DNA of 64,000 nucleotides, from assembly GCA_964199315.1 (NCBI GenBank), contig OZ116706.1, positions 7,626,001 through 7,690,000 on the forward strand. Direction: 5' to 3'. Under the pieces are notes generated by a model. That model searched no databases, was not told the DNA's origin, and saw nothing but the letters and a program-made list of their open reading frames with translations. The position numbers were made by a program, and so were the translations under genes. Position 1 is the stretch's first letter; each line of letters begins with the position of its first letter. The DNA comes from Orbicella franksi (taxonomy: Eukaryota). This document shows, piece by piece, positions 19,061 to 19,378 of this stretch.

Positions 19061-19378
19061 TCTTTAGGAGCGACCAGAAACTGCAAGGGACCGCATACGA
19101 TAAACGCCGAAACACGTGATGTGGTAACGCGTGTTTCGGCGCGCAAGTGAGTTCAAAGTACGGAACTTGATATAGTGAACGGGTCATTTTGCAATTTATG
19201 TGCGTTGGCTGTTGGACTGGCGTTACATATCTTCGCTACACAGTGCTGACGAGCCCCAAGAAGAGCGAAACAGCTGTCCACCGTTGCGATCCTACTTTAT
19301 CGGTTCTTGTCATGTTGGTGTCTCGAAACGTTTTTCACGTAGTATCAGCCTTGCAGTCTATTGTTTGTCTTTAGGAGC
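19061..19378 (+). mobile_element. ~300-bp hammerhead-bearing insertion (retrozyme/Penelope-like non-autonomous element) with 11-bp target-site duplication
   Basis: TCTTTAGGAGC occurs at 19061-19071 and 19368-19378. The intervening sequence is absent from the other U5 units and has subterminal inverted repeats ACTGCAAGG/CCTTGCAGT. Confidence 0.75.
19240..19284 (+). ncRNA. Type I hammerhead ribozyme motif
   Basis: ACAGTG (stem I) CTGACGA (core) GCCCCAAGAAGAGC (stem II, one C-A mismatch) GAAA C-AGCT-GTC (palindromic stem III; cleavage triplet GUC ending at 19278) CACCGT (stem I', 5 of 6 pairs). Confidence 0.85.

Follow-up and report, generated by a model that had tools for sequence, protein, structure and literature searches.

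The 296-bp insert found at the 3′-end of one of the U5 snRNA genes in a 64,000-nt stretch of the Orbicella franksi genome (contig OZ116706.1, positions 7,626,001–7,690,000; hereafter the window) is very probably there by chance, as a defective copy of a non-coding retroelement family that is dispersed in the genome, carries a hammerhead ribozyme and is of the animal non-LTR retrozyme or Penelope-dependent kind. The window contains seven U5 snRNA genes, all on the minus strand, scoring 85–95 bits with Rfam model RF00020. In a MAFFT alignment of the seven units the insert block (19072–19367) was present in copy 5 only, and it was bracketed by exact 11-nt repeats. The first-pass annotation, which had placed an insert absent from the other six units between two copies of a U5-end sequence, was right in this respect.

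19061–19071, no strand: left copy of the target-site duplication, TCTTTAGGAGC, made up of 8 nt from the U5 3′ flank and the three final nucleotides of U5
19368–19378, no strand: right copy of the target-site duplication, contiguous with U5
19376–19497, minus strand: U5 snRNA copy 5, RF00020, 90 bits, intact across the Rfam model

Of the Rfam U5 model, the right repeat includes the three final nucleotides (19376–19378), and it extends over 8 nt of the 3′ flank; thus, the U5 gene is intact, with 8 nt between its 3′-end and the start of the element. In the other six U5 units the corresponding flank is present once, and, with the insert and one repeat removed, the flank of copy 5 becomes colinear with its paralogues. 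DNA runs of 10 studies, labelled as four species, contained junction-specific words of the insertion, which argues against an assembly artefact and for a non-recent insertion.

In a search of the coral’s own genome (497 Mb) the body of the insert had at least 406 first-look candidates; all 40 scored body matches were 95–97% identical over insert positions 36–296. Insert positions 2–36 matched the same loci, ~50 nt downstream of the body and on the strand opposite to their orientation in the window. A 38-nt terminus had 228 matches with no more than three mismatches vs none for the reversed control. By mapping 60 loci onto one reference unit we defined a family unit (u1–522) of ~522–526 nt with 45% GC, non-coding, composed of a 37-nt linker, a 135-nt leader, a 265-nt body and an 86-nt distal segment. 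The hammerhead is situated inside the body (u305–349, with cleavage at u343/344); in the Rfam search of the unit, no tRNA or other family was matched. ORFs of the unit, counted in a constructed dimer, did not exceed 106 aa and look like chance ones; the 106-aa ATG ORF is on the sense strand and extends from one unit into the next (L088:1015–1538, with the junction in L011 and L027). Rfam matches to microRNA families on one of the loci (MIR393 and MIR8562 on L024) were rejected as spurious, since they reflect inverted arms only.

Termini located at C1:44084388, 44084914 and 44085440, with 526-bp spacing and with a body match following in register, indicate, by their coordinates, a direct array of at least three units with a 526-bp period on C1. 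Some family insertions recurred with the same flanks at distances of 30–130 kb (L070 and L071 at C3:17337477 and C3:17378183; also C8:25296161, 25325798 and 25458628), which indicates segmental duplications later than the insertions themselves.

Two end zones, separated by 86 nt, can be recognized in the unit. The T end, ...CCTTGCAGTTTCTGGTTTC(TCAT), is the end of the distal segment (...CCCTTGCAGTTTCTGGTTTC, u522; copies often go 3–4 nt further into TCAT), and the S end, ...CCTTGCAGTCTATTGTTTGTCTTCAT, is internal (u427–448). Both zones read TC(T)TCAT, and each is 10–24 nt downstream of one of the two CCTTGCAGT copies, which are direct repeats within the unit. The run of seven T residues after the S end was considered as a possible Pol III terminator; this reading was not adopted, as most S ends stop before the run. 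In terms of the unit, the insert consists of the following parts.

19072–19107, minus strand: T arm, the last ~35 nt of the family 3′ terminus (u ~485–519), inverted with respect to the body
19108–19367, plus strand: S arm, 5′-truncated body, u172–436 (to 19371 counting the 4-nt overlap TCTT)
19107–19139, plus strand: perfect 10-bp stem-loop, CCGAAACACG...CGTGTTTCGG, on the inner (5′) side of the body arm
19349–19357, plus strand: CCTTGCAGT motif, 11 nt upstream of the S end

The window copy is, then, a 36-nt inverted arm and a 260-nt body arm of the ~522-nt unit. Its T arm stops ~3 nt before the usual ...GGTTTC terminus, while the S arm stops at the second, internal end zone of the family (...GTTTGTCTTCAT). 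There are five differences from the family majority in 265 nt of the S arm (1.9%), with a family median of 2.5%, differences being counted against majority-rule bases of the family copies. Five copies (L001, L002, L004, L019 and L021) are 5′-truncated at u163–172, no more than 10 nt from the 5′ side of the stem-loop. The first four nucleotides of the right duplication (TCTT) also match the continuation of the element, a junction microhomology; the same 4-nt microhomology (TCTT/AAGA) was seen at the junction of L005.

The 9-nt subterminal inverted repeats reported in the first-pass annotation, ACTGCAAGG (19081–19089) and CCTTGCAGT (19349–19357), are real; they arise from the inverted family 3′ terminus that makes up the initial 36 nt of the insert and brings in a second CCTTGCAGT. 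They are not termini of an element, being a by-product of a two-armed insertion. Inverted repeats inside a flanking duplication would also be carried by a cut-and-paste DNA transposon or a MITE, a reading to which we give next to no credence: the repeats are missing from single-armed copies, the motif copies in the unit are direct, and the copies show variable 5′ truncation, partial tandems and duplications of variable length (7–13 bp).

The location of the insert could have been explained if its retrozyme family targeted 3′-ends of U5 snRNA genes or were enriched there, as had been proposed initially. The insertion occurred just 8 nt past a U5 3′-end, with a duplication that reaches into the gene, and if this family alone is considered, the probability of landing at random no more than 10 bp from a U5 3′-end is low (~450 copies × 41 genes × 20 bp / 497 Mb, ~7e-4). 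The genome search with tabulation of flanks and target-site duplications gave a different picture: the copies are dispersed over unrelated sites, their duplicated target sequences are diverse, and none of the 53 other distinct insertions has a U5 gene within 1.5 kb. The family is absent from all six sister copies of U5 within the window, as it is from at least 27 U5 genes elsewhere. BLAST of U5 against 30 body-selected loci matched the window’s own locus only; BLAST of the unit against 30 U5 loci produced overlaps of the window copy plus one 53-nt match of 81% identity in L056. For 11 further U5 matches, judged by coordinates, there was no family copy within 130 kb among those listed. U5 targeting is refuted by this distribution, and a family drawn to U5 3′-ends is a highly improbable source of the insert.

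Mobile elements specific for snRNA genes, Utopia, Keno and Dada, are known; they are defined by recurrent insertion at one target position. The family described here resembles them only in the place of this one copy beside an snRNA gene: those elements recur at one position of the target gene, whereas only one of the 54 examined insertions of the insert family is at U5, with none at other U5 genes. We note that a chance hit such as the one observed is unsurprising only when all ribozyme-bearing and other elements, as well as all small-RNA genes, are counted.

On 20 U5 loci outside the window (62 kb) Rfam found one hammerhead, L056:2330–2371 (plus strand, 41.2 bits). This motif is a diverged relative of the element body, with almost no helix III and without a tandem repeat; situated 709 nt upstream of the U5 gene, it was rejected as a sign of association with U5. 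A density of one hammerhead per 62 kb of U5 loci is close to the background reported for a coral genome, that of Acropora millepora with its more than 6000 motifs (PMC7229834).

A weaker form of preference, a mild regional or motif bias with no targeting of a sequence, towards A/T-rich stretches between G/C or towards AAAGA-like words, we consider unlikely. The U5 3′-box region (cctaaAAGAg, beside the G/C-rich terminal stem) would then be such a site, located in open chromatin. Target sequences do tend to A/T-rich stretches between G/C, often with G/C followed by 7–13 A/T-rich nucleotides and again by G/C. AAAGA or TCTTT was found five times near 19 targets vs 1.7 expected (P ~0.03), a weak result of a small, post hoc and uncorrected test; one could add the TCTT/AAGA microhomology at the junctions of the window copy and of L005. 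The AT content of targets (0.55), on the other hand, was not above that of controls (0.60), and other U5 genes offer the same motif yet are empty.

The motif in question, a 3′-box-like sequence, cctaa(n)ttaaaagag or cataatttaacagatg, was common to U5 flanks across clusters, 1–18 nt downstream of the genes (e.g. 11337–11376, 16409–16448 and 20540–20579 in the window; L031–L058). In copy 5 the element follows cctaaaga, the edge of the motif, and the duplication keeps the motif core beside the gene. The consequence of the insertion for the U5 gene is probably small, as gene and motif core stay contiguous; an effect on U5 3′ processing is a matter of conjecture.

Copy 5 differs from the other six copies in its Sm site (AAUUUUUCG vs AAUUUUUUG), and the closing pair of its 3′ stem is non-standard; possibly this paralogue is slightly degenerate. 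In a cluster on C13 (8.10–8.35 Mb; L037, L039, L041, L044, L048, L055 and L058) U5 genes alternate regularly with tRNA genes, located ~1.1 kb upstream and ~1.4 kb downstream of each U5, which suggests a composite U5–tRNA tandem repeat unit; no tRNA matches were found in the window’s own U5 cluster.

The 54 distinct insertions (the window copy and 53 others) were classified by the ends of their arms.

Two-armed (T end plus S end): 21 of 54
Single arm ending at T: 17 of 54
Single arm ending at S: 10 of 54
Insertions with a short snap-back piece: 5 of 54
S/S insertions: 1 of 54
T/T insertions: 0 of 54

In the two-armed class, one arm ends at T, and the other arm is inverted and ends at S; the window copy has the architecture of this class, the commonest one, and its T arm is very short. 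A single duplication of 7–13 bp was found around both arms of at least 12 two-armed insertions, which means that each of these was one event. The arms are 5′-truncated at variable points, and most copies have no more than 1.2 units and one ribozyme; 13 arms cross the junction of successive units, with 11 of their 5′ ends falling into u421–490 of the preceding unit. Insertions of Penelope-like elements are described as having 5′ truncation, partial tandems, an adjacent inverted 5′-truncated copy, an extension at one end and duplications of variable length (PMC8557442); all these features were found in the insert family. The one-sided extension is longer here, 86 nt vs 30–40 nt in Penelope-like elements, and, unlike theirs, it is bounded by two similar end motifs.

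The anatomy of the window junctions is consistent with the following route to the U5 site. Staggered nicks, 11 bp apart, would have been made just past the U5 3′ stem. The U5-sense strand (...CTAAAGA) would have paired at its 3′-OH end with UCUU of the S site in the element RNA, and synthesis of the 260-nt body arm would have been primed from there, while the 3′-OH of the other strand would have primed at the T site, with an extension of only ~35 nt. The two cDNAs would have been joined with loss of u437–484, as in twin priming. The presumed enzyme is a Penelope-like RT with a GIY-YIG endonuclease, which would have been supplied in trans. After insertion, the window copy would have gained five private substitutions, with two of them breaking ribozyme helices.

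Twin priming was reportedly described for human L1, by Ostertag and Kazazian in 2001. In L1 products, as in the two-armed insertions, one duplication encloses a short direct 3′ arm together with an upstream arm in inverted orientation; at the junction of the inversion there is a small deletion, and the end primed internally shows microhomology. L1 uses a different RT/EN class, and its internal priming is spread along the RNA, whereas in the insert family it falls into one ~15-nt zone; also, the two arms in this family often overlap in content, which is impossible from a single pass on one RNA.

With an independent choice of ends at the 17:10 usage seen in single arms, ~40% of T/T insertions would be expected; none was seen. 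One could tentatively speculate that both nicked target strands prime one RNA/RNP at two motif-directed internal sites, and that this may explain the tail and the inverted arms of Penelope insertions. If so, the one-sided extension would be the segment between the two priming sites. The origin of Penelope-type inverted arms and one-sided extensions is still called undefined (PMC8557442). The strict T/S pairing along with the two similar end motifs is the only potentially new point in this scheme.

The state of the ribozyme in the window copy shows why we call the copy defective.

19240–19284, plus strand: type I hammerhead motif, Rfam RF00163, 29.7 bits, local E 2.7e-5
19264, plus strand: private G-to-A, breaks a helix II pair; G in 47 of 51 sister copies and in all RNA reads and contigs
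19282, plus strand: private T-to-C, breaks a helix I pair; T in 51 of 52 copies, C in the window copy alone

The motif has a 6-bp helix I, a 4-bp helix II and a 2-bp helix III with the palindromic loop AGCU; GUC occupies 19276–19278, with predicted cleavage 3′ of C19278. The Rfam model did match at the place where a complete type I hammerhead antisense to U5 had been annotated, and its location and GUC were confirmed. Completeness was not: the score is below the RF00163 gathering score of 34 bits, and, with the core intact, one helix I pair and one helix II pair are broken. At 19282, where cmscan flagged a non-standard pair, all RNA reads have T. In the folding prediction for the window ribozyme sequence helices I and II were not formed.

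The family-majority hammerhead (L024, 1634–1678) scores 38.8 bits, above the threshold of 34, with all pairs standard: a perfect 6-bp helix I, a 4-bp helix II and a 2-bp helix III with palindromic loop AGCU. Over 64 nt, 13 of 44 arms match the majority ribozyme exactly, and ~60% keep the core and all pairs. The majority ribozyme is predicted to cofold as a domain-swapped dimer (−36.3 kcal/mol vs 2 × −16.1). In its architecture the majority ribozyme agrees with the published ‘canonical metazoan type I’ hammerhead, for which cleavage in dimeric form only is assumed (PMC4209133).

Family RNA was detected in 14 RNA runs, each holding 30–38% of the sampled words of the unit. We aligned two raw-read poly(A) runs and two contig sets to 19000–19372; libraries of this type would miss small circles. 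There was no read depth in these four sets over the flank 19000–19051. All reads had the family bases, not those of the window, at 19125, 19140, 19264 and 19282, as did nearly all reads at 19216. Loose read ends at 19073, 19107 and 19371 ran into canonical neighbours; for the T arm (19073 and 19107) both reads and contigs continued with these rather than with the window’s neighbours. The reads come from sister copies, and the window copy was never among them. In the informative run 71% of reads run on into unrelated sequence, and read depth was similar in both orientations; the family is thus transcribed, and the unrelated sequence suggests that this is largely within other transcripts (host co-transcription). 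In the poly(A) runs and contigs there was no pile-up of read ends at 19278/19279 or elsewhere, and reads cross the cleavage site.

These data bear on the initial view of the insert as a retrozyme, which was correct in part. The insert does belong to a hammerhead-bearing, non-coding retroelement with target-site duplication; the view of it as a unit able to make circular RNA is not supported, as it is a 5′-truncated, partly inverted fragment with a single damaged hammerhead. For the family, a true retrozyme cycle is possible, though doubtful: tandem transcripts would be cut by dimeric hammerheads and ligated to ~522-nt circles, followed by rolling-circle reverse transcription, with the window copy as a by-product of the cycle. 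The unit is non-coding, low in GC and devoid of LTR, PBS and PPT, as retrozymes are. The 13 arms across a unit junction, the direct array of at least three units indicated by terminus coordinates and the share of copies with intact ribozyme (~60% of the 44 arms) would fit such a cycle, as would the highly self-paired unit RNA (−191 kcal/mol, z = −8.7 vs shuffles) and the documented circles of coral retrozymes (PMC7229834). However, 5′ ends of the longest arms cluster in u421–490 rather than at the cleavage site 343/344, read ends show no accumulation at this site while most reads go into unrelated flanks, and copies of more than 1.2 units or with more than one ribozyme are in the minority. This alternative concerns the template only and is compatible with chance insertion of a defective copy, the explanation that we prefer.

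Another alternative, that the insert was derived, as a fragment, from the terminal repeat (pLTR) of an ordinary autonomous Penelope-like element and not from a separate non-autonomous family, is improbable. The hammerhead type and the insertion style are those of Penelope-like termini, and GIY-YIG frames are plentiful in the genome (PF01541: 149 scored matches, 1018 candidates). Yet all 30 terminus-selected loci carry the ~522-nt unit, bordered by unrelated flanks or duplications, and none of them is situated beside a long ORF-bearing body; the fallback offered in the first-pass annotation, a fragment of an ordinary Penelope-like terminus, does not agree with this uniformity. Also, no listed GIY-YIG match was within 20 kb of a listed family copy.

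An autonomous partner sharing sequence with the unit was not found among the GIY-YIG matches listed. Dependence of the family on Penelope-like elements is suggested by insertion style and ribozyme type. Some GIY-YIG matches lie in open frames of 750–1034 aa (e.g. C7:16902218–16902487 and C3:19168269–19168451); the abundance of GIY-YIG frames suggests that the genome has many, possibly intact, Penelope-like elements.

Among known elements, animal non-LTR retrozymes share with the insert family a non-coding unit with one type I hammerhead, the lengths of helix I (6 bp) and helix II (4 bp), a short helix III with a palindromic loop, which implies dimeric cleavage, GC content below 50%, target duplications longer than 4 bp and highly self-paired RNA; the host, too, is a coral genome with thousands of hammerhead motifs. 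Coral retrozymes described so far are 220–245-bp repeats of A. millepora (Cervera & de la Pena 2020, PMC7229834), so that a unit of ~522–526 nt is more than twice as long as their monomers. Other differences are the rarity of long tandem arrays, with copies being mostly of no more than 1.2 units or two-armed inverted, and the 5′ ends of the template, which are off the cleavage site. Penelope-like elements (Penelope, Poseidon and Neptune) and their derivatives share with the family truncation, partial tandems forming pseudo-LTRs, the inverted copy and the hammerhead in the repeat (PMC8557442; PMC4209133), whereas the autonomous Penelope-like ORF, coding for a telomerase-like RT and a GIY-YIG endonuclease, is absent from the 522-nt unit. 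By most tested features, the family groups with animal non-LTR retrozymes and Penelope-dependent non-autonomous elements (PMC7229834; bioRxiv 10.64898/2026.07.22.740005).

The analysis removes a tempting but wrong claim of a ribozyme element that targets U5 genes; in its place, a further hammerhead retroelement family, with a larger unit, is documented in a coral genome. Being homogeneous and young (median divergence of 2.5% from the majority) and having two defined end zones with strict T/S pairing, this family is a clean natural data set for the study of Penelope-type reverse transcription.
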